Position numbers and translations under genes: made by a program. The notes under the pieces are model-generated. The model worked only from the letters and a program-made list of their open reading frames with translations, was not told the origin of the DNA and ran no database searches. From the IMG/VR virus record IMGVR_UViG_3300035181_000357, positions 62,001 to 126,000 of that record: a stretch of 64,000 nucleotides of DNA; one strand, given 5' to 3'. Of the stretch, positions 5,859-61,571 are shown piece after piece. The stretch's first letter is position 1. The number at the start of each line of letters is the position of its first letter.

Positions 5859-6718
5859 TATTTCCTTCCCATGAACATAGGTAATCTCTTAGAAGATTCC
5901 TTCTTAGTATCTGGGTCATATCTAATTTCATCTTTAATATCCTGATCCATATGGGTCTTCAGATCTTCCCTAGGAGGAAGTAGATCAGGACGTTTGTGTT
6001 GTTGAATCTCAGCAGATTTTAATTTTCTAGCGAAAGCATCAATGTCGGGAGCGTATTCATATTTAACACGAACTTCTCCACCAACCATCACCCAAAATGG
6101 GCCATCTTTCTTGTATTCGATGTCATAGTCATAATCACTGTCTTTAATTCTCTTTCTGAAATTAATTCTGGAACCCCCACCAATGGCTCGTGCATAACCA
6201 TTCTTTATGGCGACTGCACATAGCTCTTTTAGAGTGCCTTCAAACTTCTTAGGCATAGTAGCGAAAGCAGCTGTAGTAGGAGGATCTGGCATTACATGAT
6301 TCTCTTCTAATCCTCTTGAGAAGAATGGACTATCATTCCTATCGAAGTCCTTACGAGGTTCGTAAGTAGGTTTTCCGAGTTCTTCATTTACTGCATCGAG
6401 AGCTCTCTTCTGTTTAAGATGAGTGGCGAGGGCCATCTTGGCTCTCTTATTCTTCCAGAAACTGGAATAAGCACTTGTTTTAGGTTTAGATGCTTCTGCA
6501 TCTTTAACCCTCATCAGAGTTGCTTCATCATGTAGTTTCTTCATAATATTATAAATCTTATTCTCAAAGTCAACAAACATCTTTGTTAACTTGGGATCAT
6601 CAGCTGGAATCTCTGACATGACTTCTTTTCGGAGTCCCTCGATGAATGGCTGAAGGTGTTGTAGGGACAGGTCCCTAGCTTTATCCATGAAATTCTTCTT
6701 GGCTAGTTTGCTTCTCAT
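5858..6718 (-). CDS. Hypothetical head-module protein
   Basis: 286 aa ORF coupled (TAATG) to protease gene. Confidence 0.6.
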   Translation of the reverse strand: MRSKLAKKNFMDKARDLSLQHLQPFIEGLRKEVMSEIPADDPKLTKMFVDFENKIYNIMKKLHDEATLMRVKDAEASKPKTSAYSSFWKNKRAKMALATHLKQKRALDAVNEELGKPTYEPRKDFDRNDSPFFSRGLEENHVMPDPPTTAAFATMPKKFEGTLKELCAVAIKNGYARAIGGGSRINFRKRIKDSDYDYDIEYKKDGPFWVMVGGEVRVKYEYAPDIDAFARKLKSAEIQQHKRPDLLPPREDLKTHMDQDIKDEIRYDPDTKKESSKRLPMFMGRK

Positions 6719-6769
6719 AAATACCTATGTCATTACCTTAAGTGAATAGAAGTTAACACATGGATAGAA

Positions 6770-7156
6770 TTATACAGCGACATTCTTCTTTCTTCTAGAT
6801 TTAGCTCTAGCAGCAATCTTGGAGAAATCCTCAGGATGTGCTAGCGCATCCATTGCATCCATCTCAACAGTAGGATTATACATTGTATAACTACCACCAT
6901 GTCCAATAGCTAAATGGCACTCATTTTTACTCATATATAAAGTAATTAGATTTCTAACATCTAGCTCGAGTGCAGGAGCTATATTAAATGGAACCATATG
7001 ATGTACTTGCAGAAGAGTTGTAGATCCACAAACTGAACAACTAGAATGAGTCTTTAAGAATTTCTTTCTGACTCCATCCCATTTTGGTGATCTAGATATT
7101 TTCTTTATAGTTTCGCGAACTAGTGATTGTACTACGTTTAAGATGTGGGTTATCAT
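6770..7156 (-). CDS. HNH endonuclease
   Basis: CSVCG...LQVHHMVPF...NLITL...CHLAIGH. Confidence 0.85.
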   Translation of the reverse strand: MITHILNVVQSLVRETIKKISRSPKWDGVRKKFLKTHSSCSVCGSTTLLQVHHMVPFNIAPALELDVRNLITLYMSKNECHLAIGHGGSYTMYNPTVEMDAMDALAHPEDFSKIAARAKSRRKKNVAV

Positions 7157-7235: not shown

Positions 7236-7910
7236 TTATACTTCGTTTGAGTATCTAATTGAACGACCAGTGACATCACTCTTGTTCAATCCAGAATCGA
7301 TGAATTCACCATAGACTGAACCAGCGATGTCGAATACATCAGATACGATAATTGTGCAATTCTCAGTTACTGCAGCCTGTTCGACCTGATACCCAGTAGA
7401 ATAATCGGTCATCCAGCAACCTTCATAAACAGTTACGATAGCATACAATCCAGGATTTCCTAGGTTGTTTAATCCACCCTCATTGTTAGTGACAATGGCA
7501 GGAGTTGCCTGATCTCTGTTGGTTGATTCAGATGCTAATTCAGAGAATACGATCTCAGTCTTGATATCAAATGGCCACTTGTGGTGCTTCAGAGAACGGA
7601 CGAGCCCACTAACACCAGCTTTGTAACCAAACTGCTGCATCAAGTTCTGAAGATACAGAGCAGTTCTATCAACAGTTAATGACATTGGATTCGTGACACC
7701 TGGAACTAGTTCAGCAACCTGATCACCGAAGCCTAGACCTCTAATGGTCTCAACGTTCCTGGATTCAGAAAGCTGGAAGCTACTGGTTACACCAATACGA
7801 GAGAATTTACCAACCCCAGCAGCATGACTGTACATTTTAAATCTTGTACTGACTACAGTCCTTGTCTGGGCACTGGCTCCTTGTCTATATAGATAGTTAT
7901 TTCCGGACAT
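7236..7910 (-). CDS. Tail tube protein
   Basis: SESRNVETIRGLGFGDQVAELVPG, LTVDRTALY, PFDIK, TVYEGCW typical of myophage tube proteins; downstream of sheath. Confidence 0.7.
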   Translation of the reverse strand: MSGNNYLYRQGASAQTRTVVSTRFKMYSHAAGVGKFSRIGVTSSFQLSESRNVETIRGLGFGDQVAELVPGVTNPMSLTVDRTALYLQNLMQQFGYKAGVSGLVRSLKHHKWPFDIKTEIVFSELASESTNRDQATPAIVTNNEGGLNNLGNPGLYAIVTVYEGCWMTDYSTGYQVEQAAVTENCTIIVSDVFDIAGSVYGEFIDSGLNKSDVTGRSIRYSNEV

Positions 7911-7968
7911 ATTTGTTACTCCTCACTAATAGCATTTACAAAATCATTGTTATAAAATGGATAGTTCA

Positions 7969-9999
7969 TTATTTCAACAACTGAGTTATTGGGGAACTCA
8001 GAACGAGTAGTGCTTCTACACCCAAGCAATTACTGATTGCTAACTGGGCTACCTGTGGGCTATAATTTGCAGCTAACAACGCAGCTTGTAGGTCTCCAAC
8101 GGTTCCTTCTTCCATCTTATCGACAGCAGAGAGGATGAATTCTTCAGCATTCTCTACGGTATCACCGTGAGATTCTGCAGTTGGGGCATCAGTCACAGCT
8201 TTGATCTCAACCGTTGAAGCATACTTGCTAGCTTCAAGCATTAGCTTGGTTGAATCTAAAGATGCATAGACAGCGTCATGCTCAGCATAGAAGGACTCAG
8301 TTCCTTGACCAGTAGTATCTACATTAGCAGCAGTATTACTGTCGGCAACATCAGCGTGATCATGAGTTCCATCACAGTCTTCACAGTCACCAGAGCATGC
8401 ATGCTTTGAACCAAACTTGCTTGACTCAAATTCATTGATCTTAATGAGGGCATCAACTAACAGATCTTTCACAGAGGATAGTTCTGGATAATTGGTGTAA
8501 TCTTCAGGAAGAGCAGTTGCCAGGCCATCGATTTCTTCTGGGGCCATAACTTCGACAACATGTTCAAACCCACCGTCTTCCATAGCAGCGTTAAATCTGC
8601 TAAAACTTCCTTTAATCCCCATACTCTTTAACACATCTTTATCAGCTTGATCGAATTGGAGATTGTCTTGTACAGCAGGTTCTGATACTCCGTTCTCATC
8701 GTACCCGCCTGCTGAGAAATAATTTTGAACTCCCCGTACTGCCATATCTCTGACATGAGTTCTTTCATCAGAGCCTTCTTCGAAATTGGATTCGGGAAAT
8801 AGCTCATCGATATACTTGTCTACAATAGCTTTTAATAACCTAGGATTCCAATTCCTTACTTCACTTAGTTTATGATCAATGAAGATAAAGTGTACGATAT
8901 CATGAGCATAGTCGTTGAGATCATCCATAGCAGCTTCTTTAGTAGCGACAACTTCTACTTCTTTAACACTACTCTCTCTGATCTTAGAGACATTCTCAGA
9001 TATCTGCTTAGTTCCAGTCTGAGCTAGCTTTAAAGCCTTATGTAGAACCTCATCCATCTGGAAATAGAGATCTTTTATTCCTTGCATCTCTTGTTGAGTT
9101 CCGAGTTTCTTCATAACGTCGCGAACTCTACCTAGGATCAAGGAACTAATGACATCTTCAATTTCCTTAGAGAAGGCCACTACTTGAGGAGCAGCAACTC
9201 TCATACTCTTACGCTTAGCTTTTTTCTTACCTTGGATTCCCATACCCCTTAACATCTCTTTATCAGAATCGTTAAAGACTACTTTTTCTTGTTCTTTAAC
9301 CCAATCAGGTTGCATATTGGGTAGATACGCAATGAAGTATCCTTCTGCTGGTTCCATACCGTAGTAGGCTCCAGCATCAGACTTTAATACAACCGTCCCA
9401 GATCCCGGATCAGTGAATACCTTTTCGACTAATTCACCGTCATTGATTAGATCAGGAGTTAATTCTATTAAGGGATCACCAACATTGAACTCTTCAGTAT
9501 CCAGATCAGCGGTCTTCTTACCTAGACCACGATTAGACATCTCGAGTTCACATGCTTTGATTTCTTCATACGCAGAATTATCACCCTTTTCAATCGCTTC
9601 TTCGGCAGCAGCATAACATTCAAATAACTCATCATCGGACAAGAGTGACATATCGTCTGACCCATATTTCTGAAGATCTTCCTCACCTTGATCAAAGGCA
9701 GAAGATGGATCATCCTGTGAATCCAGACCCAGGGAACTCTGTTTGAAGATCTTTTCGATACCTTGAGTCAGGGCATTGTCATTCAACATACCCTTTAACC
9801 ACTGTTCAACTTGCCCAGTCACGAGACTCCCTTTAGAACTACCACCAGCAGGAGTTTTAGCCAGCTCTTGTTGTAGTTTAGGGGCACCACCAGCAGATAG
9901 AGCATTTTCTAATTTGCTCTTATTCTGTCTCAGGTATGTTATAAGGTTCTTAATGGTTTCATCAGCGAAACCAGCTTCTTTGACACCGTTGATATCCAT
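7969..9999 (-). CDS. Large acidic modular virion (head-internal?) protein
   Basis: 676 aa; internal repeat F(N/D)xxDKxxLxxMGIxG twice. Confidence 0.55.
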   Translation of the reverse strand: MDINGVKEAGFADETIKNLITYLRQNKSKLENALSAGGAPKLQQELAKTPAGGSSKGSLVTGQVEQWLKGMLNDNALTQGIEKIFKQSSLGLDSQDDPSSAFDQGEEDLQKYGSDDMSLLSDDELFECYAAAEEAIEKGDNSAYEEIKACELEMSNRGLGKKTADLDTEEFNVGDPLIELTPDLINDGELVEKVFTDPGSGTVVLKSDAGAYYGMEPAEGYFIAYLPNMQPDWVKEQEKVVFNDSDKEMLRGMGIQGKKKAKRKSMRVAAPQVVAFSKEIEDVISSLILGRVRDVMKKLGTQQEMQGIKDLYFQMDEVLHKALKLAQTGTKQISENVSKIRESSVKEVEVVATKEAAMDDLNDYAHDIVHFIFIDHKLSEVRNWNPRLLKAIVDKYIDELFPESNFEEGSDERTHVRDMAVRGVQNYFSAGGYDENGVSEPAVQDNLQFDQADKDVLKSMGIKGSFSRFNAAMEDGGFEHVVEVMAPEEIDGLATALPEDYTNYPELSSVKDLLVDALIKINEFESSKFGSKHACSGDCEDCDGTHDHADVADSNTAANVDTTGQGTESFYAEHDAVYASLDSTKLMLEASKYASTVEIKAVTDAPTAESHGDTVENAEEFILSAVDKMEEGTVGDLQAALLAANYSPQVAQLAISNCLGVEALLVLSSPITQLLK

Positions 10000-45705: not shown

Positions 45706-46617
45706 CTACTGCAGTTCTTCAGAAATATCATACGTTTCTGGGACAGAATCTTGAACCCTTATCTCTTCCAACTCTACTCTCTGGAGTAATGAAATACCAG
45801 AAGTATCTGAATTTGCACTTGAATCAAAAATTTGATCGATGATCCTTTTCTCTTCTCTTATAAAAGATGTCTCCATCAAAACCGGATCATCCTCTAAGAA
45901 GGATAGAGCTCTTAGACCACATCGCAGACTGTGATACTTCTTGTCATCACCACAACAGGTTTCTAACTCTTCCATGAAACCTTCTGCATCCTCTTTTGTC
46001 TTAGCTAGGAAAGTCATCCCAACCTTTCTACCATCCTCTATAATCTTATACTTTAACCACGACGTATCCATCGTAGTTATCCTTTGGGATTCCAGGATCT
46101 CAAACTGTTCCCTGATTCTTTCTCTTATAATATCTGAAGTGGAATGCATATACATCTCAGATGGGATAGGAGGATTCTTTGCCTGAACTTTCTTCAATTG
46201 GAGAATCAAAGAATATGTGTCTACCAGAGTTGGATCTTGATCTTTTGGTAAATTCTTTATCTCGAAAGAGAGTCTTGATTCCAACTCTTCCCTTGTCAAG
46301 AACAATAGAAGCATATCTCTTCGAAGTCTTGCATTAGGAAAGTCATACAAGTCATTAAATCTAGAGACTAGCTTATCTCTAACATCTTCTAGAGTTTTCT
46401 TTAGAAGACTACTATTTTTCAGTAGTAATTTTCGTCTATAGATTAGGTCATTTACTTTTGGAAATACGACATCTCGATAGTGAAGAGCTACACATTGAAG
46501 TGTTGTCTCTTTTATCTCTTTGCCTGAATCTAACCTAAATCTCAAACCAAACCTCTTCCTACTTAATACGGGATTAAGTATGACCTGTAGTACAAATTTA
46601 ATCGATTCAAACCTCAC
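45706..46617 (-). CDS. Orphan protein directly downstream of the structured RNA; candidate partner of the TnpB-like locus
   Basis: 303 aa, basic N-half, acidic C-terminus; no confident family. Confidence 0.55.
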   Translation of the reverse strand: MRFESIKFVLQVILNPVLSRKRFGLRFRLDSGKEIKETTLQCVALHYRDVVFPKVNDLIYRRKLLLKNSSLLKKTLEDVRDKLVSRFNDLYDFPNARLRRDMLLLFLTREELESRLSFEIKNLPKDQDPTLVDTYSLILQLKKVQAKNPPIPSEMYMHSTSDIIRERIREQFEILESQRITTMDTSWLKYKIIEDGRKVGMTFLAKTKEDAEGFMEELETCCGDDKKYHSLRCGLRALSFLEDDPVLMETSFIREEKRIIDQIFDSSANSDTSGISLLQRVELEEIRVQDSVPETYDISEELQ

Positions 46618-46626
46618 AATTTTAAA

Positions 46627-46846
46627 CTCTGAAGACCAGAGATTGCCTAGTATGCACCCAAGAGATAAGTCTCGGGGTTATTGATCAAACCCAGCTGGCT
46701 CACATACGTGGCCACTGTAAAGCCGCAGCAGCTTGGGAAAGAATCAACGATACAGACTTGTTGATTCCAACCACCTCCTTAGATACCACTCTTGGATATC
46801 CTCAGTTTGTTTAACTGAAACTTTGAATAAAGGAGACTCAATAACC
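46627..46846 (-). ncRNA. Multi-stem structured RNA (about 220 nt)
   Basis: Nested helices: 46676-84/46838-46, 46775-80/46830-35, 46741-48/46760-67, 46690-96/46730-37 plus small hairpins; G-U pairs favour minus strand. Confidence 0.65.
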
Positions 46847-46857
46847 AAATGGATCGT

Positions 46858-46877
46858 TTATTATGATTATTGTTATT
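46858..46877 (-). repeat. 20-nt exact copy of 48246-48265 (candidate guide)
   Basis: TTATTATGATTATTGTTATT on + strand at both positions. Confidence 0.95.
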
Positions 46878-46965
46878 TTCTTTCGACGTTGCGTTTGGGA
46901 CAAAGTCCTCAGCAGAACCAAGGATGAGTAGAGGGAGGCACCTTAGGTGCTTCTAATTCTGCATA
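46878..46965 (-). ncRNA. Candidate omegaRNA-like scaffold overlapping the 3' end of the TnpB-like gene
   Basis: GCAGAATTAG/TTGGTTCTGC stem enclosing GCACC-TAA-GGTGC, then GGAC-TTT-GTCC, then the 20-nt repeat. Confidence 0.45.
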
Positions 46966-48075
46966 TCCTAGTTCCATACACGAAGAAGCTAGAACCTGAC
47001 TTCTAAGCCTGTTCTTTCCTCTTCGTTTTGAGATGATACCAGTATCCTGGATAATCTTAAACGCGATAGCACCTTCCGCCTGTCGCGATCTCCCAATCCT
47101 TTTGATGATCATATCGATATCGTCAAGATTGTTCTTAGTGTCTTTCTTATGTTTACTAAGGAAGACGAATCTACAATTCTTAGAAATCTCTTTAAAAAGA
47201 GAATTAAGATACTTGTAGTGGTTCTTTCGAACCCTATCTGCTTTGACACTGATCTCTAATTCCTTACCGGTATCGAGGCTCAGAACCTTTATACTTAGAT
47301 GATCGTTGTCAGCAGCAATACCAATATCTAAGGAACCAGAAGGTGTAGTATCAGTTGCTTCGACGGATTTCAAGACCATATAATAATATCTGTGATCTCG
47401 TCTTACAACCTTTATACTCTTAACATCTGCCTTTTTAATACTGGATGGTATGGTTACAGAAGTTTTTAATTTCTGTAACCTGGTTTCTAGTTCTTTTATC
47501 AGGTTCTTGGTCTTGGTCTCATATCTACTAAATGTGATATGGATAGGATCTTCATCCTCTTCATAATCCCAAGACATCTTACTCAATCTCGAGGTCTCTA
47601 ATTCAGTCTTCGATTTCAATTCCATGCTAATCTTACTAAGTTTATTCTGTAAGATTCGTCTCGTTTTCCCAGTGGCTACATCAGAACGTTCCTGGTTTCG
47701 CTTCATTTCATAGCGTCTCTTGTTTTCGATTCGCTTCAGATTCAGATATTCGGTTTCAAGTTTCGTGTTCAGAGTTTTTAGTCTTTTGTCTGTTTTCGGT
47801 CGCAGGTGTCGTTGGGTGAGTTTACGTTTACGTTGGTAGTCTTTCAGGCATATCTCGACGATCTCTCTATCCCGTACTAACATGGAGGCTACATCTATGC
47901 ATAGCGCATTGGGTTCAGAAGAAAAAGATTCGGGGGTTAGGTTCTGGATTCGGCCACCAGAAGCGTCTATACCCACTAGACAATTCCACACCATTCTGTA
48001 GATCAAGAACTGCTGACCATAGTCGCCAGTTCTAACAAATGATCTTCTTACAACAGATGACATGAACAATCTCAC
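46909..48075 (-). CDS. Probable nuclease-dead TnpB/Cas12f-derived protein
   Basis: 388 aa, very basic; RMVWN helix, KSIKVVRRDHRYYYMV, DIGIAA..LSLDTGK, HYKYLNSLFKEISKNCRFVFLS, RSQVLASSCMELG..EAP occur in TnpB order with RuvC D/E/D apparently replaced. Confidence 0.5.
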   Translation of the reverse strand: MRLFMSSVVRRSFVRTGDYGQQFLIYRMVWNCLVGIDASGGRIQNLTPESFSSEPNALCIDVASMLVRDREIVEICLKDYQRKRKLTQRHLRPKTDKRLKTLNTKLETEYLNLKRIENKRRYEMKRNQERSDVATGKTRRILQNKLSKISMELKSKTELETSRLSKMSWDYEEDEDPIHITFSRYETKTKNLIKELETRLQKLKTSVTIPSSIKKADVKSIKVVRRDHRYYYMVLKSVEATDTTPSGSLDIGIAADNDHLSIKVLSLDTGKELEISVKADRVRKNHYKYLNSLFKEISKNCRFVFLSKHKKDTKNNLDDIDMIIKRIGRSRQAEGAIAFKIIQDTGIISKRRGKNRLRSQVLASSCMELGYAELEAPKVPPSTHPWFC

Positions 48076-48137
48076 AAGTTAGGAACTGATACACTCAAGG
48101 TCAAGTAAATTCTTAATTCTACAAGAAGTTATCGATA

Positions 48138-48412
48138 TCCTGTATAGTAAGAACAACAAGGATGACCGTAACCTGTAACAACCTGTATTCTTAATAATTA
48201 TAATAGATAACTGATAATAAGTAACAATTATAACTTATAATGATGTTATTATGATTATTGTTATTAGGAATTAAGGACATGTTGTACACCTGTATCTAAT
48301 TGTTGTTGTAGCTGACAGGTTGTGTTCTCAATTTTGGACAATTTATACTTTCTGAATCATGTTTTTAAAGTCTCTCTATTACCAGGTACTTAAGAACACT
48401 TCATACACAGGT
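48138..48412. promoter_or_regulatory. Divergent control region and candidate replication origin
   Basis: Only strand switch in the window; about 80-nt AT-rich core 48187-48266; ACCTGT at 48171, 48181, 48288 and inverted ACAGGT at 48315, 48407. Confidence 0.55.
48246..48265. repeat. 20-nt exact copy of 46858-46877 (candidate target)
   Basis: Identical 20-mer, same orientation. Confidence 0.95.
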
Positions 48413-48458
48413 ATAAAATTAGGATTTAGAACTTGTCACCTTATTGAAGAGGTGACCT

Positions 48459-48929
48459 ATGTGGTTTGTATCGATCCTAAATTTCATGAAGCCAAAGATG
48501 CCTGAGTTCATTAAGAAAGCTTTCTTTGAAGATGATGGTAAGACTGTTTCGAGTTCCCGACTTATGGGAGGTCTGACCTTCGCTGTCCTACACTTCTGTA
48601 ACGTGACCTTGGTCGGAGCTATTTCGTGGGGGATCTGGTCGGTGATCAAGATTCATCCTATTGACAATATGGCTCTCACTTCTTTACTAGGTTCCATAAA
48701 GTACCTAGCTCTGTTATACCTAATCTTGGCTGCAACTGCTCTAGCCTTGTATGGTATCAACATCTGGAAGTATGTGTCTGCCATCAAGAATGGTTTGAAT
48801 AATGACGTCGATGGTTTAGAGGAAGAAGTGACTAAGACTTCTACCCAGGTTGAATCTACAAAGACTGTGACAACTCCTACCAAAGCTCCTGAAGTTCAGG
48901 TAGAGAAACCAACAAAAGACGATTTGTAG
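48459..48929 (+). CDS. Holin-like membrane protein
   Basis: SSSRLMG followed by two hydrophobic helices and a charged tail. Confidence 0.55.
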   Translation: MWFVSILNFMKPKMPEFIKKAFFEDDGKTVSSSRLMGGLTFAVLHFCNVTLVGAISWGIWSVIKIHPIDNMALTSLLGSIKYLALLYLILAATALALYGINIWKYVSAIKNGLNNDVDGLEEEVTKTSTQVESTKTVTTPTKAPEVQVEKPTKDDL

Positions 48930-48959
48930 ACCTATCAACCTTATTAATTAAGGTGACAG

Positions 48960-49424
48960 ATGGCTATTGCCAGAAAACGTGATGACAATCTTATCGAAAT
49001 CCTGATAGGGAAAGATCTATATGTTTTTAAATCTCTGTCTTGGTTGGATGAGATGGTTGTTAAAGAAGTTGATGGTATTTCCAGAGAACGTCAGTTGATG
49101 GCTAGAGCAACCATATCTGTCTCAAACAACCTGACCTTCACTTATGAAGAGAAACTGAAACTGATGAGAGCTATCCCACTCGCTATCTTTAAAAGAGTGT
49201 ATACTATCTATAAGGCTTTAGAGGCTGATGGTAGAAGACCATTTAAAACCATCCACTTATATATTGCACCAGAAGTCACTAAAGTCTTGGGAAAGATCAA
49301 GATGGAAGACGAGGATATGGAAGAGACTCTGAATGCTGTCTTTGGAGACGATGAGGCTGAGGTCCGAGAAACTGAGGAACTAATTCTTAAGAATTCTGGG
49401 TTGAAGGGAGCCACAAAAATCTAA
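48960..49424 (+). CDS. Probable tail assembly protein
   Basis: Upstream of tape measure; context only. Confidence 0.45.
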   Translation: MAIARKRDDNLIEILIGKDLYVFKSLSWLDEMVVKEVDGISRERQLMARATISVSNNLTFTYEEKLKLMRAIPLAIFKRVYTIYKALEADGRRPFKTIHLYIAPEVTKVLGKIKMEDEDMEETLNAVFGDDEAEVRETEELILKNSGLKGATKI

Positions 49425-50482
49425 TGGCTACTGCTGGTACTCAATTAATGGAGAAGATTAACAGTGGAGAGATTCAAACTGTTAAATCAGGTGTAACCAA
49501 GAAGATAAGACAAGATGTATCATCTGTCTTCGAAGAGATACTGGGAGTAGGAGCGAGAATTCGTCCTATCCTCTTAGATGGGTCTAGGATAGGGTGGATT
49601 CGTGGCCTTAGTGTTAACGAGAGAAAGTTGCTGGCCTCTTGGTTTAATGATCAGAATGAGTTAATAACTCAAGCTCTAGTATACTCTACATCGTTATCGA
49701 AAGAAGATATAGTTAATCTAAACTCATATGAATTTAGATCCTTGTTAAGACTAGCCAACATAATGAGCACAGCAGATGTCAGCCTGTACCCATACCTAGT
49801 TCCATATACTTCCACATCTAGTTCAGATGATTTGTGGCGAGCCTGTGGTTGTATAGTTCCTCAGTTCCTGAATAAAGATATAACTATGCCAGATAGTAAA
49901 ACTATACGAATACTGTGTAACTCTGATCATAGTAGATTCTGGGCAAGTCTATGCAGCAAAAGGGACCAAGCCTCTTCTGAATTATCCGGGAATTATGATG
50001 CAGCTATGGTAGCTGGTGCTATGGTGGGTAAGAGTGTTCAGAAGTATATAACTAATCTAAATAAGAGAGCCTTGTTGTTAGAGATAAATTCTGATAATCC
50101 ATGGAAGAACATCTCTACAATAGACCAGGCAGATTCCCTAGATCTGAATGATGGATGGGGCCACGCACATGAGGATTCGTCGGAAGCTGGCCTCTTAAGA
50201 GAAGGTGAAGGTATGGTTGGGTTTGATAAACACGAACAATTCATGGAAACATTCTACGATCAGTATATGAATAGGCAGCAAAAGAAGACTGAAATAACTA
50301 AAAGAACCGAACAAGGGTTAATAGATGAGGTATCATCTATTATGACTGAAAAAGAAGTACAAGCTAGAGAACGAGATGTAGATAAAGAAAGTTCTAGAAT
50401 AAGACAGATGGCAGTAGATGAAGCTTCTAGTGCCTCAGATCGTATGGAACAAAAAGATAACATGACTTTCATTGTAGACTAA
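49424..50482 (+). CDS. Probable tail assembly protein
   Basis: TAATG-coupled; context. Confidence 0.45.
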   Translation: MATAGTQLMEKINSGEIQTVKSGVTKKIRQDVSSVFEEILGVGARIRPILLDGSRIGWIRGLSVNERKLLASWFNDQNELITQALVYSTSLSKEDIVNLNSYEFRSLLRLANIMSTADVSLYPYLVPYTSTSSSDDLWRACGCIVPQFLNKDITMPDSKTIRILCNSDHSRFWASLCSKRDQASSELSGNYDAAMVAGAMVGKSVQKYITNLNKRALLLEINSDNPWKNISTIDQADSLDLNDGWGHAHEDSSEAGLLREGEGMVGFDKHEQFMETFYDQYMNRQQKKTEITKRTEQGLIDEVSSIMTEKEVQARERDVDKESSRIRQMAVDEASSASDRMEQKDNMTFIVD

Positions 50483-50492
50483 AGGAAATTAA

Positions 50493-51065
50493 ATGGAAAC
50501 TACACCACTAAGAACGTTAGACGATATAATCAATGATCTTCAAGGTTTTGGTATAGCCGAATCTGAGGACATAATCTCCTTAAATGTAAATAACAGAACT
50601 GTACAACTTAGAATTAAGAATCTCCCAACAGAGGAAGAGATCAATTCTCTTCTAGCTGCAGAAGAGTTTAAAGGGCATATGTGGGTCCAGAGAATCCGAG
50701 CTGAGATCCTGTCCAGATCCATATCTTGGATGAATGGAGTGGTGGTCACAGGAACTGAATACGTAGCACACCCTCTCCGTGATAAGATATCTGTAAACAT
50801 AAGAGTGGCTTTACGAGATGTTCTCTTAACTTGGGGTGTTGAGACTATCTCAATTCTCTGGAAGATCCTGATGGTCCATAACCAAAAGATCGAAGATAAT
50901 CTTATCGAATCATTCCCTGATACAGTCATAATGACTAATTTCGAGCAGAGATTCTTCCAACAGACTATGAAGGAATTGGAAGAAGCCCATAGAGGCGTAC
51001 TGGATGCTGTAGTGTCAGACACCTTAGTAGACACTATCGATGATCTCAAGAAGGGTGATCAATAA
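50493..51065 (+). CDS. Tail assembly chaperone-like protein
   Basis: Immediately before tape measure; LRIKNLPTEEE, EILSRSISWMNG. Confidence 0.5.
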   Translation: METTPLRTLDDIINDLQGFGIAESEDIISLNVNNRTVQLRIKNLPTEEEINSLLAAEEFKGHMWVQRIRAEILSRSISWMNGVVVTGTEYVAHPLRDKISVNIRVALRDVLLTWGVETISILWKILMVHNQKIEDNLIESFPDTVIMTNFEQRFFQQTMKELEEAHRGVLDAVVSDTLVDTIDDLKKGDQ

Positions 51066-51124
51066 ATAACAGGAACGAGATTCTATGCCTCTGTAATGCA
51101 GAGGCATATTAATAGAGGTTTAGA

Positions 51125-54370
<3,246 letters not shown>

Positions 54371-55987
54371 ATGGCCACAAAATCTGTAAAGACGAGCGAT
54401 CTAGATATTTATATAACAGAAGCCTGTAAGACAGGTGCTAAAGAAGTAACAGCTAAAGTCTTAAAAGCAACTCTGTCTGGTGAACAGAATTTATCTGGGA
54501 GTAATGTAGTATATAATCCTGCCTCCAACAGTTCTGGGGCCTGGGGCCTCGCCCAGATGAAGGATCAGGCACTATTATCCTGTGGTCCTAGAGTTCTAGG
54601 GTATGGTCCTAAAGAGAATCCACCAGAACAGACCTATATGGATGCTCTTCATAAAGCTGCAGCAGAACCAAAGACTGCTATAAAGTTAATGAAAGCATAT
54701 TTAGATGCTGAGATTCCTGGTATAAAAGGATCTTTAAAAGGTGTTAAGTATGATAGTAACGATATAGGAGCTATCGTAGCTGGATCATACAATCTCGGTG
54801 CCTCAGAGAATAAAAAGGCTATCCTAGCGTCTATAGCTAATGGTAGATTTAATAAAGATGCATATTACCAAAATTACTATAACACCCTAAATCCAGCTGA
54901 TAGAAGTCAATCGAATGTTAACAGAGTTAGAAAAGCTGGAGGAGATTTACCAACCAACGTCCCTTATACAGCTAAAGCTACTAATCTCATGGAGATAGAA
55001 AAGGGGAGAGCTGCAAATTATATAGCTAATGTAGATTTTCTATCAGATACTGTGTCTAATGGTGCATTATCAGAGATGCCTTCTTTAATAATCGAAGAGG
55101 GACTAGACAGTAAACCATGGTATGATGATAGAGAGTTGACAACAGGTAATAGAAACCTTAAACTAATATCAACACCAGCCTGGTTTGAGATAAATCTAAA
55201 ACAAGATATAAAAAGTAGTAATAGGTTAAAGTATAACAATGATGTAGTTAAGGTTAAGCTTAATGTAAGTTTATCAGAAGTACAGGTCTCTCTCGCTCAT
55301 GTTATAAACAATAGACACTCTAGAACTGGATTCCATGTAACATTATGGGGGCAGGAACCAGATACTATATCTGCTTCTGGATCAACGGGTGTCTTTATGA
55401 ATTTCTTTGGTCTCGCGAACTTGATGAGTGAGGAGGGAGTTATGAATAGGTCTGAATTAGAGGATGCTTTTTTATACGATTCAGACAATAACAAAAATCC
55501 AGCAAATAAAGCAAATAAAGGTGTGTACCAGAGAACAGTATCTCTAGAAAACCAACCTCTTAGGATAGCTGCTCAGGAGGCATTTATAGAGATGTTAAGC
55601 CTGTTTAAGAATAATGGAATCACAAGATTTCACCCTGAAATAGTGAATAGAATATATCCACAGAATAAGCAGGGAAATGGTGGTGTGGTTAGTGGGGAAG
55701 CCTCTAGAACATCTGCTAAAGAACCTATGAATCCCTGGTCAAAAGCAATAGGTATGTCTTTCACCCAAGCAACCAACAGATCCAATGATGTCATGACCAG
55801 GGGATACGTAGTATTTAAGTATAAGAACAAGACGTACCTTGGATACTTTAAAGATATAAATTTTGAAATGGATTCCAATAATCCGTTCCGTTGGAATTTC
55901 AATTTCACATTTCAGGTAGAGAGATCTCTGTCTACTACATTCTTTTTACCAAACCTCAGCAGCGGGTTTGATAGTAATTTTGGATAA
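54371..55987 (+). CDS. Lytic-transglycosylase-like N-domain fused to tube-initiator/hub-like C-domain
   Basis: SGEQN, GAWGLAQM, AGSYNLG; C-terminal TYLGYF...PFRWNFNFTF. Confidence 0.65.
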   Translation: MATKSVKTSDLDIYITEACKTGAKEVTAKVLKATLSGEQNLSGSNVVYNPASNSSGAWGLAQMKDQALLSCGPRVLGYGPKENPPEQTYMDALHKAAAEPKTAIKLMKAYLDAEIPGIKGSLKGVKYDSNDIGAIVAGSYNLGASENKKAILASIANGRFNKDAYYQNYYNTLNPADRSQSNVNRVRKAGGDLPTNVPYTAKATNLMEIEKGRAANYIANVDFLSDTVSNGALSEMPSLIIEEGLDSKPWYDDRELTTGNRNLKLISTPAWFEINLKQDIKSSNRLKYNNDVVKVKLNVSLSEVQVSLAHVINNRHSRTGFHVTLWGQEPDTISASGSTGVFMNFFGLANLMSEEGVMNRSELEDAFLYDSDNNKNPANKANKGVYQRTVSLENQPLRIAAQEAFIEMLSLFKNNGITRFHPEIVNRIYPQNKQGNGGVVSGEASRTSAKEPMNPWSKAIGMSFTQATNRSNDVMTRGYVVFKYKNKTYLGYFKDINFEMDSNNPFRWNFNFTFQVERSLSTTFFLPNLSSGFDSNFG

Positions 55988-55990
55988 CTT

Positions 55991-57001
55991 ATGTTAAGCC
56001 ATGATCAAGATACCAGAAATATCATAAATTCTATGGATTCGTTGGAGAATATAAACATTCTACCAACTAGAGGAGAGAATAAAATTCTCCCACTAGCCAT
56101 AGATAAATCTGTATTTCCAACTACAATCTCAGGAGCAGCAGGAATACCTCCAGACTTTAATTTTAGAGATTCTTTAGATGAGTTAGACTTCGCCTCTTCT
56201 AAAGCAAGAATAACCCTTACAGATTATATAACCATAAAGGTTAATAATAGAAAAGCAGCAAACGGGGATCCTTTCGTCTTTAGATTTTTAATAAATCCTG
56301 AATCTCTAAATATAAACAGGTCATCAGTGGATGGGCAAACCATGACTCGAGCTGGGTGGCAATTTGGTGTCTGGGGAGAGGACTTCATAAAGATTAGTGG
56401 TAAAGGAACGACAGCTGGGCAATACTTTGCTAGAACCCTAACTGATGGATATGGGGAATACACCTTGTCTTATAGAAATCTCCTGGCGTTCATGACTCTG
56501 TTTGAGAACAATGGGTATTGGTTTGAGGGAGAAAGTCCTTTCGATAATGGTCCTCTTGCCTCTGATCTCCTGAGAAGGAGAATAAAGAAGCATTCTGATG
56601 TAGTGTTCTCAGTTGGAAATTTCATATGGAATGGGATGTTTCAAAGTTTAACTGTCTCAGATACTGCAGATACACCATATTTCAATACTTTCAGTTTCAA
56701 TTTTATAGCCTGGAAAGAGCGATATAGAGGTAGTAGTCCTTGGTTAGACAGTACAGAATCAAATCTATATCGGGGACACGCATACGAAGCAGGATATAAG
56801 AATAAGAGTATATCTGAGTCTGGTGGTAGTCAGCAAGGGAATGTATTAAACAATGCCGTAGATTCTACACCAAGTTCACTATCATCTAGTAGTAACCAAA
56901 CATCTTATGGATTATCTGGAACAGATCAAAAGATAACTCTGGGGCAACTTCAAACACCACCCCTTTTAGATATCACAAGACAACTTAATGGTGGGAAATG
57001 A
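55991..57001 (+). CDS. Tube-initiator/baseplate centre protein
   Basis: FLINPESL, WGEDFIKISGKGTT, WNGMFQSLTV...PYFNTFSFNF; paralogous to the preceding C-domain. Confidence 0.6.
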   Translation: MLSHDQDTRNIINSMDSLENINILPTRGENKILPLAIDKSVFPTTISGAAGIPPDFNFRDSLDELDFASSKARITLTDYITIKVNNRKAANGDPFVFRFLINPESLNINRSSVDGQTMTRAGWQFGVWGEDFIKISGKGTTAGQYFARTLTDGYGEYTLSYRNLLAFMTLFENNGYWFEGESPFDNGPLASDLLRRRIKKHSDVVFSVGNFIWNGMFQSLTVSDTADTPYFNTFSFNFIAWKERYRGSSPWLDSTESNLYRGHAYEAGYKNKSISESGGSQQGNVLNNAVDSTPSSLSSSSNQTSYGLSGTDQKITLGQLQTPPLLDITRQLNGGK

Positions 57002-59322
57002 CTAATATAAGAAATATATCACAAACCCATATGGAACGGGATATTGTTAAGACAGCTCCAGATATGGTTGTATATATAGATGATTATCCTTTTATAGAAA
57101 ATCCATATATAGGGGACTCTGGTACATCTGTAAACTTCAATGACTTCATAACTACAATCACAGGCCATTGTGATTGTGATTCCCTTATTCCAACAGCCAG
57201 TATTGTTCTATCAGTTCCTAATCATTTTAATTATCTGTTTCTAGCTCCTGGTGGAAACAAGATTCTGGCTACAATGTCAATAATCAAAATATTCTCGAAA
57301 GGATATTATTTTGATGATGATGGGAATACAGTGTATCACAGAGTATTCTATGGCTTAATAGATTCTGTTGGATATTCATACACTGGAACTACTCTACAAA
57401 TAACGATAGGATGTAAGGGTATAATGCGTTTGTTTGAACTTATTCAGACAAATGTGGCCCCAGGTGCAGCAAACTTCGCCGTATTAGCTGGTAAATCATA
57501 TTTAGTACCATTCAGAACTAAAGATTATGATAAATCTGCCTTAGCAATCATATATAAGAGTATATTTAGAGATCTAAATGCAGATGAGATTGCAGGAGCA
57601 CTTCCTGATGTTACTCTCCAGAGGAGTATATCAACAAACGCTTTGGATACTAGAATGACCAATAGTACACTCGTTTCTATGGTGAAGAATAGATACATCT
57701 TAAGATGGGCCCCTGTGATGTCTGAGATAAAAGCTGCCACCAGAATATTTGGTTGGGATTATGAGCTTGAGAAGAGGGATAAGAAGACAAAGGAATTATC
57801 TAATCTTCCAGATGCAAAAGAAATGGCTGAAGCATCTTTTATTCATCAAACCGATTCAGTGTCTAAATACCTACCAGATTATGCGATTGGAAATATCACG
57901 CTTCTACAATCTAAAATTGTAACAAAATTAGAGAGAATATCATCAATGTCTGGTGTGATTGGGTATGAAGCATATCAAGATCTAAATGGTAATATCATAT
58001 TTAAGCCACCTCTCTATAATCTAGATGTTACTAACACTACAGCAATAGATGAATCTAAGAATCCTTTCATTATAAATCTTGATGAGATCATAGATGAGAG
58101 TGAACAAGAAGATGAACAAGCTATCCGAGCCACGAGAGTAACTGTGAAGGGGCAACCTTGGGGTGCTCTCCTCCAAGAGAGTTATAATCAGAGTATATTA
58201 CCTGGTGTGTCGTCATACACCGATATGAATCTGTTTGCTAAATTTGGTATGAGAGAAGAACCAATCAAAGAGATATCCTGGCTAAAGGAAGACAACAGAG
58301 TCAACTATGCCTATGCCATCTCTGAAATGTTTAGAATGAATAGAGCATATAGAACCTACAGATTCTCTATTCCTATGAGACCTGAAATGAAGGTTGGGTT
58401 CCCTTGTTATATCAAACATCATGATATGTATGGGTACACAAGAAACATATCCTGGAGTTACACGGTTGGTGGAACAGCAACAATGAGCGTAACCTTGGAC
58501 TCTCTAAGAAGAAGAGTGTTGGTTCCAATAGAGGTTAAGAATTCTGATGGTACAACTGTAACTGAGTATAAGAGCATTCCAAATCTAGTATCTAAGTTCT
58601 CAAAGAAAGCTAAGAAGCCTAAAGAAAATGTATCCCCAACTGAAGCTGCGGTAGATGAGCGTGGGAAGGTCCTAGCTTATGGTACTGGTAAAGATTCTAA
58701 GAAAGTACCAGATTCTCAGGCAGAGATCGTGATAGATGATAGGAATCATAATGATTATGAGGATCTTATCGTAGTACAGACAAGAGTCCCAGATAGCGGA
58801 GAGTCCTGGCTTATTGGTGAGGATGAAGATAATTTCTTCGTACACGAGAGAAAATGTGATACTACATATCTCAAGGCTTTGAGTGACAAACAACCATTCA
58901 CTGATAATAATGGGTATGAATTATATGGGCCCTTCCCATGGGGACGTTGGGTTACACTAGAATCTGCAATAGGAATATTTACTCTATCGTTGACAGAGCA
59001 GAAGAATAACAATACTGAATCCTGGATCGTATCAGATGCTGTTAGTTTGAGTATGATACTTCTAGGTTCCTTCAATCCAGATATTGCAAATCTAAAAGGT
59101 GAAATAGCTAAGAAGACAGAAGAAGATATAAAGAAGTTATCAGGGTATAACGTAACTAAATTCACTATCAATGCTTCTAAATATGATTCGCAGGACAATA
59201 AAGATGGTCCTAAGTCACTAAATCCTGATGGTCCATCTTTCATCCCTAAAACCGAAAATAGAGATGTATATAAAGAACCATTGAATACCATTAAAAACAC
59301 ATTTATATGGCCTAAACTATGA
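56998..59322 (+). CDS. Baseplate hub protein
   Basis: YEAYQDLNGNIIFKPPLY, IPMRPEMKVGFP; position. Confidence 0.65.
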   Translation: MTNIRNISQTHMERDIVKTAPDMVVYIDDYPFIENPYIGDSGTSVNFNDFITTITGHCDCDSLIPTASIVLSVPNHFNYLFLAPGGNKILATMSIIKIFSKGYYFDDDGNTVYHRVFYGLIDSVGYSYTGTTLQITIGCKGIMRLFELIQTNVAPGAANFAVLAGKSYLVPFRTKDYDKSALAIIYKSIFRDLNADEIAGALPDVTLQRSISTNALDTRMTNSTLVSMVKNRYILRWAPVMSEIKAATRIFGWDYELEKRDKKTKELSNLPDAKEMAEASFIHQTDSVSKYLPDYAIGNITLLQSKIVTKLERISSMSGVIGYEAYQDLNGNIIFKPPLYNLDVTNTTAIDESKNPFIINLDEIIDESEQEDEQAIRATRVTVKGQPWGALLQESYNQSILPGVSSYTDMNLFAKFGMREEPIKEISWLKEDNRVNYAYAISEMFRMNRAYRTYRFSIPMRPEMKVGFPCYIKHHDMYGYTRNISWSYTVGGTATMSVTLDSLRRRVLVPIEVKNSDGTTVTEYKSIPNLVSKFSKKAKKPKENVSPTEAAVDERGKVLAYGTGKDSKKVPDSQAEIVIDDRNHNDYEDLIVVQTRVPDSGESWLIGEDEDNFFVHERKCDTTYLKALSDKQPFTDNNGYELYGPFPWGRWVTLESAIGIFTLSLTEQKNNNTESWIVSDAVSLSMILLGSFNPDIANLKGEIAKKTEEDIKKLSGYNVTKFTINASKYDSQDNKDGPKSLNPDGPSFIPKTENRDVYKEPLNTIKNTFIWPKL

Positions 59323-61571
59323 AATTCATAAATCTATCACAACGATTATCCCCCTTAGAACACACTGTAGAAGATGTTCGTTATGGTATATTTATAGGTC
59401 AAGTCGAGTTCGTAGATTATGAAAAACAGATTCTAGCTGTGCGAGATATCACTACTGGAATCTTGTATGAGAGAGTAGAAGTTCAACCTGCTTCATCCAG
59501 TTCTACAGACCATACAGATACTACTATTCCTTTAGAGGGTTCTAAATGTATCTGTTGTAATATATCTGCTACCAATGGATTTATTAAGGTTGCTGTAATA
59601 CAGTGGCTCCTAACAGCTACAAAATTAGGGTTAAATGGAATCTCATATAGAGATTCTAACAATCCTAAGGGATATAATCTCAGAAGACGTTATATCTATA
59701 GAAAGGGATACCCAGGACAACATGTAGTCAGTTTATCTGGTGGATATGCCGAATTAGAAGACTTGGGCTGGGACAGACAAGGTGAAGACCTGTCTAGAGA
59801 CCATTTAGACACATTCAGAAGAGTCAGAACCCAGACAGCAGGAACGCATTTTCAGGTAGATGAATCCGGTCTACAGATAAGTGGAGAGATTCTAAGACCA
59901 GGTTCAGACATACCTACCAAAGTTCTACCAGATGGGACATTAATTCAGTCTCTACATCTTAAAACTGGGGACAGATTCGCTGATGGTTCAGCAATGAATA
60001 TCCCTGTGGTAGAGAGACTGGAGAGGACACAGGAGTATGGTCTAGGTTATCCAGTCCCACAGGAGGTTCTAGATTCAGCAGAGTTCTTAGGAGTCCTCGG
60101 GATCAATGAAGCACCATTCGCTAAGACATCTGTAGCTAACAACCTTGATGACCAGAGTTATGTGAATAACCAGGCAGTAGATGCTCCATATGACAACGAT
60201 GAGAAACCTCTCAGACCATTTGAAAAAGATGGCGTTTCGTATAGACGAAAAGGGTTCATTGTAGAATCTGTTAAAGGAACGTTAGTAGGATATAACGCTT
60301 TCGATAAATCTACATATGGCCAAATCCTAAAACCTACGTTATTCCCACACACCCAAGCTGGTAGATTCTCAACATCTCTTGAATCTGGGTATCTACCTGT
60401 CAACAAGTCAGCCGATGAAGTAGAGTCTGTCTTAGCATCTAGTGCATTTAGTCTAAGATTCCCATACGAGTACAATACAACCAGATTCGATATCACAAAA
60501 GAGGGTATGGTCCAATTCGAAATAGGATCCACACTTCCTAAAGAGAATATCCCAATTGATTCCTCTACATATGAACACCCTCACGGTGCAGGTCGTTCTA
60601 TGGAGGGGCACTTCCTAGGTTCGGTTAAACTCGTCGTAGGAAAGAACAGAGATGAAGAAGAGTCGCTCGACATCGCGACACTAGGACAAGTAGTACTCCG
60701 CCTAGGTTCTGATGACACTAGTCTCCCACAAACACGTAGAGATGTGCATACCCAGATTAGATCAAAGATGGATTCTATTCTAGGCCGTGACCTACAATTC
60801 TGGAAGAAGCCAAAGAACGACAAGACAGGAGATGCTGGAAGCCTGGAAAATAAATCTGCGTTTGAAAAAGTTAGTCTCCGTGGTGCATTTGATGGTGGTA
60901 CTATTCTTCGTCTAGGTGCTAGAGATCCTGGAGCATTAAGAAAGCATCTCCGAAATGGTTATACTGACGCTAAGGGTGTTACAGAGTCTCCAAACGACGA
61001 GAATAGAAAAGATTCTAGAACTGATGGTCGTGTAACCTATGGATCAGGAGATAGCCTTTATGCTTTCCATGATCTGACACAGGCAGGTAAATCTAAGTAT
61101 AGTAAATCTCCATACTTCTGGTCGGATTCTCCAATAACTAATATGGACCGTCATGGTCTGTCCTTGGATGTTCATGCTGTAAGAGATATCTTACTCCGTA
61201 TTGGGAAGAATCCAGACTCTGGTCAATCCCTTGCTATCGATCTTGGTGGTGGTATGGTAGCATACCTCGGTAAAGATAAGCAAAGTAGATCGATCACAGC
61301 ATCATTAGATGGTGGTGCTGAGATAACCATCAAAGCAAACACAGATGGCCATGCTCTTCAACTAGAGATAGATGGCAATGTAAATATCTATTGTAAAGGC
61401 CATTGGCATCAGGTAGTTACAGGTGACTATTATGTAGAATCCAACAACTCAACTGCTATAACTAATATAGAACACATCGTTAAAGCTACTAATATCAGAG
61501 AATCTGCTGGTGTACAACATGTCACAGAAGCGATAGATATAGTAAATAATCAGGGATTATATAAGAGTTAA
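59319..61571 (+). CDS. Baseplate spike-like protein
   Basis: N-terminal OB-like IGQVEFVDYE...IPLEGS; C-terminal beta-helix-like repeats (IDGNVNI..KGHWHQVVTGDY). Confidence 0.55.
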   Translation: MKFINLSQRLSPLEHTVEDVRYGIFIGQVEFVDYEKQILAVRDITTGILYERVEVQPASSSSTDHTDTTIPLEGSKCICCNISATNGFIKVAVIQWLLTATKLGLNGISYRDSNNPKGYNLRRRYIYRKGYPGQHVVSLSGGYAELEDLGWDRQGEDLSRDHLDTFRRVRTQTAGTHFQVDESGLQISGEILRPGSDIPTKVLPDGTLIQSLHLKTGDRFADGSAMNIPVVERLERTQEYGLGYPVPQEVLDSAEFLGVLGINEAPFAKTSVANNLDDQSYVNNQAVDAPYDNDEKPLRPFEKDGVSYRRKGFIVESVKGTLVGYNAFDKSTYGQILKPTLFPHTQAGRFSTSLESGYLPVNKSADEVESVLASSAFSLRFPYEYNTTRFDITKEGMVQFEIGSTLPKENIPIDSSTYEHPHGAGRSMEGHFLGSVKLVVGKNRDEEESLDIATLGQVVLRLGSDDTSLPQTRRDVHTQIRSKMDSILGRDLQFWKKPKNDKTGDAGSLENKSAFEKVSLRGAFDGGTILRLGARDPGALRKHLRNGYTDAKGVTESPNDENRKDSRTDGRVTYGSGDSLYAFHDLTQAGKSKYSKSPYFWSDSPITNMDRHGLSLDVHAVRDILLRIGKNPDSGQSLAIDLGGGMVAYLGKDKQSRSITASLDGGAEITIKANTDGHALQLEIDGNVNIYCKGHWHQVVTGDYYVESNNSTAITNIEHIVKATNIRESAGVQHVTEAIDIVNNQGLYKS

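Follow-up and report, generated by a model that had tools for sequence, protein, structure and literature searches.

A jumbo-phage protein of predicted TnpB fold, apparently nuclease-dead, with a proposed guide RNA that matches the region upstream of its own gene

Among described systems, the TnpB-derived TldRs carry scaffolds of 97-100 nt and guides of ~16 nt or ~9-11 nt, with targets that overlap promoters; they repress by binding over promoter elements, and act as a roadblock only when the TAM-proximal end faces the polymerase (bioRxiv 10.1101/2023.11.30.569447). In the dCas12f-sigmaE systems transcription starts 45-48 bp from the TAM, and some loci carry a guide just downstream which targets the region just upstream of the same locus, producing positive feedback (PMC13472631).

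The locus compared here with these systems lies in a window of 64,000 nucleotides, the whole stretch of DNA that was analyzed, which forms part of a 210,611-bp IMG/VR phage contig that we read as a jumbo phage. As in the TldRs, the protein has a compact predicted TnpB fold with a degraded RuvC triad, the zinc finger having been lost in most members found here; the guide RNA is placed at or beyond the gene's 3' terminus and carries the guide as its 3' portion, the proposed target is flanked by a candidate TAM and lies in a putative promoter region, and the gene stands outside a transposon. Some TldRs are likewise phage-borne, but their hosts are temperate enterobacterial prophages or bacterial operons, whereas here the host is an apparently virulent-type jumbo phage of ~210 kb. 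The proposed target is the gene's own upstream region and not a host gene, the guide match extends over 20-24 nt in place of ~16 or ~9-11 nt, and the scaffold is ~213 nt in length in place of ~100 nt; further differences are a long helical-hairpin insertion (residues ~102-198) in the protein and a second structured RNA after the guide. As sequence similarity to TldRs was not detectable, the present lineage was probably domesticated independently of them.

Transposon TnpB with its omegaRNA (ISDra2, ISFba1; PDB 8h1j, 8exa, 8iaz) provided the best full-length structural matches and shares with the locus a scaffold which overlaps the 3' end of the ORF, a guide directly after it and a TAM-type geometry. 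It differs in that here no TnpA and no transposon ends were seen, the gene keeps a syntenic position, the acidic triad lacks conservation, and the genome itself contains a match to the guide, which would be intolerable for an active nuclease. The dCas12f-sigmaE proteins are also nuclease-dead relatives in the TnpB/Cas12f lineage and some of their loci auto-regulate in cis (PMC13472631), but the present locus has no associated sigma factor, no CRISPR-type repeat, another promoter spacing and a protein unrelated in sequence. Autoregulation of Cas9 by the long-form tracrRNA, which is cited in the discussion of the TldR preprint (10.1101/2023.11.30.569447), involves, as is proposed here, binding to the promoter of the protein's own operon without cutting, but with another protein family and RNA architecture, and with an active nuclease in which a short guide avoids cleavage. 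No literature on a jumbo-phage TnpB derivative which targets its own locus was found.

The window includes genes for a tail sheath, a virion structural protein, helicases, an RNA ligase, a class II (RTPR-type) ribonucleotide reductase and GyrB. Gene orientation changes from minus (up to ~48.1 kb) to plus (from 48,459), and the stretch flagged in the original prediction is the 3' end of the first minus-strand gene past this orientation switch. The operon of the TnpB-like gene consists of the gene itself, a conserved gene whose protein had no Pfam, PHROG or NCBIfam match, the class II ribonucleotide reductase, GyrB and further genes. A common gene order was observed at the window and the five related loci (designated L001, L003, L004, L005 and L006), comprising a divergent five-gene operon, the TnpB-like gene, a conserved gene of ~250-300 aa and the ribonucleotide reductase, with GyrB following the reductase in five of the six. 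No transposase gene was called among the neighbours at the six loci, and no sigma-factor domains were found in the neighbouring genes (the 303-aa neighbour had no Pfam match, and likewise the divergent operon). Homologues of this neighbour start with M-[SK]-F-x-L at the position which aligns with the likely TTG start listed in Table 1. In the window the divergent operon (48459-61571, plus strand) contains nine genes, including those for proteins of 1081, 774 and 750 aa, and gave zero Pfam or PHROG matches. In L006, the most distant related phage, genes at the ribonucleotide reductase position carry intein-splicing domains (6302-6916 and 7661-8894), which were not flagged in the other loci.

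Table 1. Positions, strand and basis of the features discussed, numbered from the first nucleotide of the window; strings duplicated in the related phages are given at the end.
Feature	Position	Strand	Sequence or detail	Basis or context
TnpB-fold, apparently nuclease-dead (TldR-like) gene	46909..48063	-	384 aa	ORF list, translation, homologues
Next gene	mechanical ORF from GTG 46617; likely start TTG 46545	-	303 aa (mechanical ORF)	GAAGAGG ribosome-binding site precedes TTG
Proposed guide-RNA scaffold	46878..47090	-	~213 nt	Covariation, alignment A4
Helix H1	47090-47083 with 47066-47059	-	GAUCGCGA with UCGCGUUU	Encloses GGC/GCU and GGAAG loop
Stem A	46980..47026: 47026-47019 with 46987-46980	-	ACGAAGAG (5' arm)	Inner GAAC/GUUC stem
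Stem B	46976-46971 with 46918-46913	-	UGGAAC with GGUUCU	89% paired, 3 compensatory pairs
Hairpin D	46908-46898	-	GGAC-UUU-GUCC	At stop codon; 92% paired, 3/4 pairs compensatory
Outer stem arms of the original prediction	46962-46953; 46921-46912	-	GCAGAATTAG; TTGGTTCTGC	String check
GCACC hairpin of the original prediction	46950-46938	-	GCACC-TAA-GGTGC	String check
Stop codon	46911-46909	-	TGA	String check
String before the 20-mer	runs to 46878, then 20-mer 46877-46858	-	CAAACGCAACGTCGAAAGAA	String check
Proposed guide	46858..46877	-	20 nt, AATAACAATAATCATAATAA	Duplicated upstream of gene
Second conserved structured non-coding RNA	46562..46846	-	~285 nt	Covariation
Conserved -10-like block	48197..48204	-	ATTATAAT	Intergenic alignment A5 and exact match
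Proposed DNA target	48246..48265	-	Same sequence and orientation as guide	Divergent intergenic region
Candidate TAM	48266..48270	-	TTCCT	Directly 5' of target, non-target strand
Duplicated string, window, L001 and L003			AATAACAATAATCATAATAA	
Duplicated string, L004			AATAATAATAATCATAATAAC	
Duplicated string, L005			AATAATAATAACAATAATAA	
Duplicated string, L006			AATAATAACAATAATCACAAATAA	

The ORF of the TnpB-like gene (48075-46909) is open back to GTG 48075; ATG 48063 was taken as the start because the N-termini of the homologues match there. Public gene calls gave the same protein as only 222 aa with a start at M167, and since the N-terminal 160 residues are conserved in the homologues this deposited call is truncated. 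Searches of 5.8 billion and 1.8 billion protein clusters returned five relatives only (27-49% identity; family lengths of 297-459 aa), all of which were encoded on large phage contigs of up to 256 kb in syntenic loci. A profile search of the 5.8-billion-cluster database gave no further relatives, a scan of IMG/VR returned the window's own contig only, and a scan of metagenome contigs gave no matches; contigs carrying an identical protein were the same phage, at an identity of at least 99.8%. With respect to known families, the 384-aa protein had no match in Pfam, PHROG or NCBIfam, and so none to OrfB_IS605 or OrfB_Zn_ribbon, phmmer and profile searches against the PDB produced coiled-coil noise only, and tblastn and blastn against 50,697 phage records gave no match to the protein. 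Among the 5.8 billion clusters no alignable similarity was found outside the six-member family, TnpB and any TldR included. The most distant homologue (P0006) alone gave a generic zinc-ribbon match (E 5.6e-4). A near-perfect 13-bp inverted repeat, GGTTACAGAAGTT-TTT-AATTTCTGTAACC, was observed within the coding sequence (47452-47480), in a region of the protein that varies in length among homologues; it was flagged by the scan as terminator-like on the plus strand.

An AlphaFold2 model was built from the six-sequence alignment (pLDDT 75) and compared exhaustively with 48,161 chains using VIA-align. The best structural match was the ISDra2 TnpB ternary complex 8h1j (Z 11.1, 254 residues aligned, rmsd 6.6 A), with an alignment which spanned residues 2-372 of the model and 1-378 of the chain, followed by Fanzor2 (Z 10.5), ISFba1 TnpB (10.0), Cas12f (9.8) and Cas12k (9.6). 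Full-length matches were exclusively to TnpB, Fanzor2, Cas12f, Cas12k, Cas12i, Cas12m and CasPhi, and residues 238-375, which make up the RuvC domain alone, matched RuvC-type resolvases with Z 10-11 and an rmsd of ~3 A. Foldseek against the PDB gave marginal RuvC-fold matches only (E ~1e-3). The model of P0006 was poor (pLDDT 56) and serves as weak corroboration only; TnpB was again the first match (Z 9.0), and for the first 133 residues taken by themselves the matches were to the WED/REC region of Cas12n, Cas12f and Cas-lambda. P0006 retains a CxxC...CxxxH zinc ribbon at the position it occupies in TnpB, and in the other five proteins a short basic linker replaces it. Taken together the models point to a bilobed WED-REC-RuvC fold over the whole chain, as in the TnpB/Cas12 superfamily, the homology to TnpB resting on models of moderate confidence and not on sequence.

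The aspartate of RuvC motif I (DIGIA) is present in five of the six proteins and is replaced by asparagine in P0006 (alignment A2). At the RuvC-II position four of the six carry S, N or K, with no conserved acidic residue past strand 4, and the expected RuvC-III position is occupied by an invariant serine. Two of the three acidic positions therefore appear to be lost, the catalytic positions having been mapped via the order of strands in the model's secondary structure and not by residue-level superposition. We infer that the protein is nuclease-dead, because the positions of the RuvC triad are degraded and because a dead state is the sole one compatible with a perfect target in the protein's own genome. 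The original prediction had named TnpB; the type of fold agrees with this, but the protein looks domesticated, nuclease-dead and TldR-like and not like an active transposon TnpB.

Covariation across the six homologous loci (alignment A4, reaching from the region of aa 301-340 to the guide; six sequences from five distinct lineages, with an overlap with coding sequence that complicates the alignment) argues for a guide-RNA scaffold on the sense strand which overlaps the end of the gene and is bordered on its 3' side by the guide. Of its ~213 nt the proposed scaffold takes 182 from the end of the coding sequence (stop codon included) and 31 from the sequence beyond. In this structure 83.5% of cells were paired and 15 pairs had changed on both sides, which was reached in 0 of 500 shuffles, and slid controls in which partners were shifted by 1-3 columns gave 34-46% paired. 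Synonymous-codon identity among the homologues was 0.69-0.79 at aa 301-340 compared with 0.40-0.54 before it. Helix H1 was the best supported (98.5% of cells paired, 3 pairs changed on both sides); it sits within the codons for R-S-R-Q-A-E-G-A-I-A-F (47059..47090) and reads CGCGA/UCGCG in the window and CACGA/UCGUG, CUCGA/UCGAG or GACAA/UUGUC elsewhere. The G-U pairs of H1, which vary little or not at all, would become C-A on the opposite strand and therefore fix the sense (minus) strand, while its compensating changes alter residues (S/A/G, A/V/E), so that the RNA helix constrains the protein. Stem A was paired in 71% of cells with 4 pairs changed on both sides, a register shift in L005 and weak pairing in L006. 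Hairpin D reads GGAC/GUCC in the window, GAAUC/GAUUC in L001 and GAG/CUC in L006, and is followed on its 3' side by a conserved CCAAAcGCA motif and then a linker of 12-20 nt. The covarying helices H1, A, B and D stop 20-30 nt short of the guide. No further copies of the scaffold were found within the window.

The original prediction had described three stacked hairpins overlapping the stop codon directly 5' of the candidate guide, at the position of an omegaRNA scaffold, and all of the strings it quoted were found on the minus strand at the places it gave. Conservation across the six loci divided these hairpins: GGAC/GUCC was conserved and covarying, but the GCACC/GGTGC hairpin (59% of cells paired, no covariation) was essentially specific to this phage, and the 10-bp outer stem was ruled out as a conserved element by the competing stem B (89% vs 70% of cells paired, 3 vs 1 compensatory pairs), which is mutually exclusive with it and has the conserved form UGGAAC:GGUUCY. 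The flagged stretch forms the 3' third of the scaffold, but the structure as a whole is ~2.5 times longer. The omegaRNA-type position itself is supported by the TnpB-like fold, the covarying helices of the sense strand and the match of guide and target in six phages. A match of the scaffold to an Rfam model, on the other hand, was not found, either in the whole window at the gathering threshold or in 46450-47250 at E<=10, where only sub-threshold chance matches were returned. The odd C-terminal peptide, which had been put down to the RNA, does appear to be shaped by it: the protein is invariant to ...AEx[EAG]APK and divergent beyond, and the 3' arm of stem B stays placed relative to hairpin D, falling within the last codons in the window and past the stop codon in L004.

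It had also been claimed that the pairing works only on the minus strand. The assignment of strand was right as judged by the G-U pairs, but the claim fails for the window taken alone, where the plus strand of 46850-46975 folds better (-41.5 kcal/mol, z -3.86) than the minus strand (-26.7 kcal/mol, z -1.87; 8 of 200 shuffles did as well). The z-score of the sense strand was negative in all six loci. In the 110 nt 5' of the guide the antisense strand was more stable in this window only, and over the full scaffold also in L003. The plus strand carries, in this phage alone, a long hairpin (46927-46992) with a sub-threshold match to Twister-P5 (17.9 bits against a cut-off of 37.6), which is probably a by-product, because the antisense strand folded more weakly than the sense strand in L001, L004, L005 and L006.

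At all six loci a string of 20-24 nt located 31-47 nt past the stop codon was found to recur exactly, and in the same orientation, in the intergenic region 5' of the gene. In the window AATAACAATAATCATAATAA occurs exactly twice, with 0.02 occurrences expected when up to 3 mismatches are allowed, and it occurs exactly twice in the whole contig; it was rejected as a general phage promoter motif, there being two copies only in 210 kb. The 13 other matches to the 20-mer in IMG/VR were to unrelated low-complexity sequence. Between phages at least six substitutions were mirrored in both copies and none was unmirrored, and the sequences which flank the two copies are unrelated to each other. The 5' flanks of the target read TTCCT, TTCCT, TCCCT, TTCTC and TTCTC in five loci and TAATT in L004, and the 5' flank of the guide copy is unrelated purine-rich scaffold sequence. 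Such a contrast between flanks is the pattern expected of a TAM which separates the target from the guide's own gene, and the sequence 5' of the target is a candidate for that role, with L004 as the exception.

The target is located 170 nt upstream of the GTG start of the ORF, within the 100 bp of the region that are richest in AT (22% GC) and at the cumulative GC-skew minimum of the window. In all six loci the ATTATAAT block, which we infer to act as a promoter element, lies 33-43 bp downstream of the target and faces the gene; elsewhere in the window the conserved TTATCTATTATAAT block showed no enrichment, with 20 matches where 18 would be expected. The divergent operon has a promoter-like site, TTAAGA-18-TAAAAT (48390-48419), which falls on conserved blocks ~125 bp from the target, on the TAM side. 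The geometry of target, -10-like block and divergent promoter-like site ties the target to the gene's own operon. The target overlaps no identifiable -35 or -10 element, as judged with a promoter consensus that may not be that of this phage. Some imperfect inverted repeats that separate the target from the -10-like block were dismissed as noise from AT-rich sequence of low complexity. On the minus strand at 48281-48295, 10-15 nt upstream of the candidate TAM, a conserved ATACAAtGGTAT(A/G)AAC with a partial dyad (ATAC...GTAT) was observed, with equivalents in L001, L003, L004 and L005, and this block could be a protein-binding site or a promoter element. Long conserved blocks of the 5' leader, for example TTACTATACAGG and AAAATTAAGAACTTATTGAACCTTG in relatives, were also present between the -10-like box and the start codon (48076-48180, minus strand). 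The minimum in cumulative GC skew, the switch in gene orientation and the 22% GC trough all coincide at 48100-48300, as would be consistent with divergent promoters and also with a replication origin.

The explanation we prefer, to which we assign a probability of about 0.7, is that of a TldR-like, dead RNA-guided DNA binder of the TnpB/Cas12 fold which regulates its own operon as a CRISPRi-like switch. The gene would encode a very diverged member of this fold without nuclease activity, and its own mRNA would supply the guide RNA, the scaffold being followed by the guide. Through its guide the ribonucleoprotein would pair with the 20-bp site of the same sequence, flanked by the candidate TAM, that precedes its own operon, and its binding would set the transcription of the operon, most likely through negative feedback by occlusion of the region upstream of the promoter. 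The fold, the covarying helices and the identity and co-variation of guide and target are computed results; the loss of catalysis, the processing of the RNA, the binding of DNA and the sign of regulation are the steps which this scheme adds to them.

An unlikely reading with the same protein is that the R-loop of the dead ribonucleoprotein serves as a programmed opening of DNA and not as a roadblock for repression; it would act either as a promoter or activator, specified by RNA, of the replication and nucleotide-metabolism operon or to open an origin. It takes its context from the GC trough, the skew minimum and the orientation switch, which are adjoined by helicase, primase-like, gyrase and ribonucleotide reductase genes; if it were true, the machine might also include the structured RNA 3' of the guide.

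It is distinctly unlikely that the same RNA-guided binder is an activator or promoter-specifier, recruiting or positioning RNA polymerase with positive feedback as in dCas12f-sigmaE. Bound 5' of the operon, with its TAM-distal end towards the gene, it would have the arrangement of TAM, target and gene in sense, with the guide just downstream, that corresponds to category III positive auto-regulation in cis (PMC13472631), and the target lies upstream of the conserved -10-like block and not on it. We favour autorepression because no sigma-factor gene is detectable nearby, the adjacent gene being without a Pfam match, and because the -10-like spacing differs from that of dCas12f, ATTATAAT implying a start site ~76 bp from the TAM compared with 45-48 bp. 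Characterised TnpB-derived TldRs are, moreover, all repressors.

The co-variation of the two 20-mers also bears on a reading which dispenses with an RNA guide, namely that a sequence-specific DNA-binding protein uses them as a pair of operators, for instance to loop the DNA around the gene, and that the hairpins are unrelated mRNA structure. Identical sites flanking the gene could indeed bind one protein, and both lie upstream of co-directional genes. This is nonetheless very unlikely, as the sites lack dyad symmetry, their identity over 20-24 nt is perfect and sharp-edged with every one of at least six substitutions mirrored, the downstream copy always occupies a fixed place after a covarying RNA scaffold, and the adjacent protein has the fold of an RNA-guided protein.

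Starting 12 nt past the guide, a second conserved structured RNA extends to 17 nt short of the next gene's TTG start. In its predicted fold a 9-bp helix (46846-46838 with 46684-46676) closes a multi-helix junction and three hairpins follow, with 92% of cells paired, 28 of 65 pairs compensatory across six phages compared with 4-10 in slid controls, and an RNAalifold covariation term of -7.26; it had no match in Rfam. A small ORF after the guide was rejected, the short frames read by eye having no shared protein similarity and the nucleotides and pairings being conserved. A large structured RNA directly 3' of the guide is not expected of a TnpB-type guide RNA and counts against the preferred explanation. 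This RNA may be the leader of the next gene, an element for processing or stabilisation which sets the 3' end of the guide, or a part of the ribonucleoprotein. We regard it as highly improbable that this RNA is itself the functional scaffold, giving a 5' guide as in IscB/Cas9-type RNAs, and that the structures in the coding sequence serve another purpose. Its covariation is stronger than that of the 5' RNA and it starts close behind the guide, but the 5' helices covary too and force amino-acid changes, the 285-nt RNA ends in the manner of a leader at the ribosome-binding site of the next gene, and every TnpB/Cas12-fold protein known to us uses a 5' scaffold with a 3' guide. An active or recently decayed IS200/IS605-type TnpB element with the repeats as insertion or recombination scars is scarcely credible in spite of the TnpB-type fold and the 3' omegaRNA-like arrangement, given that no TnpA or transposon ends were seen, that the syntenic position is the same in six phages whose proteins are only 27-49% identical, that the catalytic residues appear lost, and that such elements make no target duplication on insertion and a scar would not co-vary.

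TnpB-derived RNA-guided transcription factors are a recent discovery comprising few clades, all of which were found via sequence similarity. The present lineage, of which 5.8 billion protein clusters contained six members, escapes sequence profiles, and it suggests that such domestications are more frequent than sequence-based surveys show. The co-variation of guide and target across species constitutes an unusually clean natural test of pairing, and the overlap of helix and codons an example of an RNA helix limiting the choice of amino acids within a coding sequence. The protein is a compact (297-459 aa) candidate RNA-guided DNA binder of a new sequence type, and the locus provides a concrete candidate regulatory node in this group of jumbo phages.
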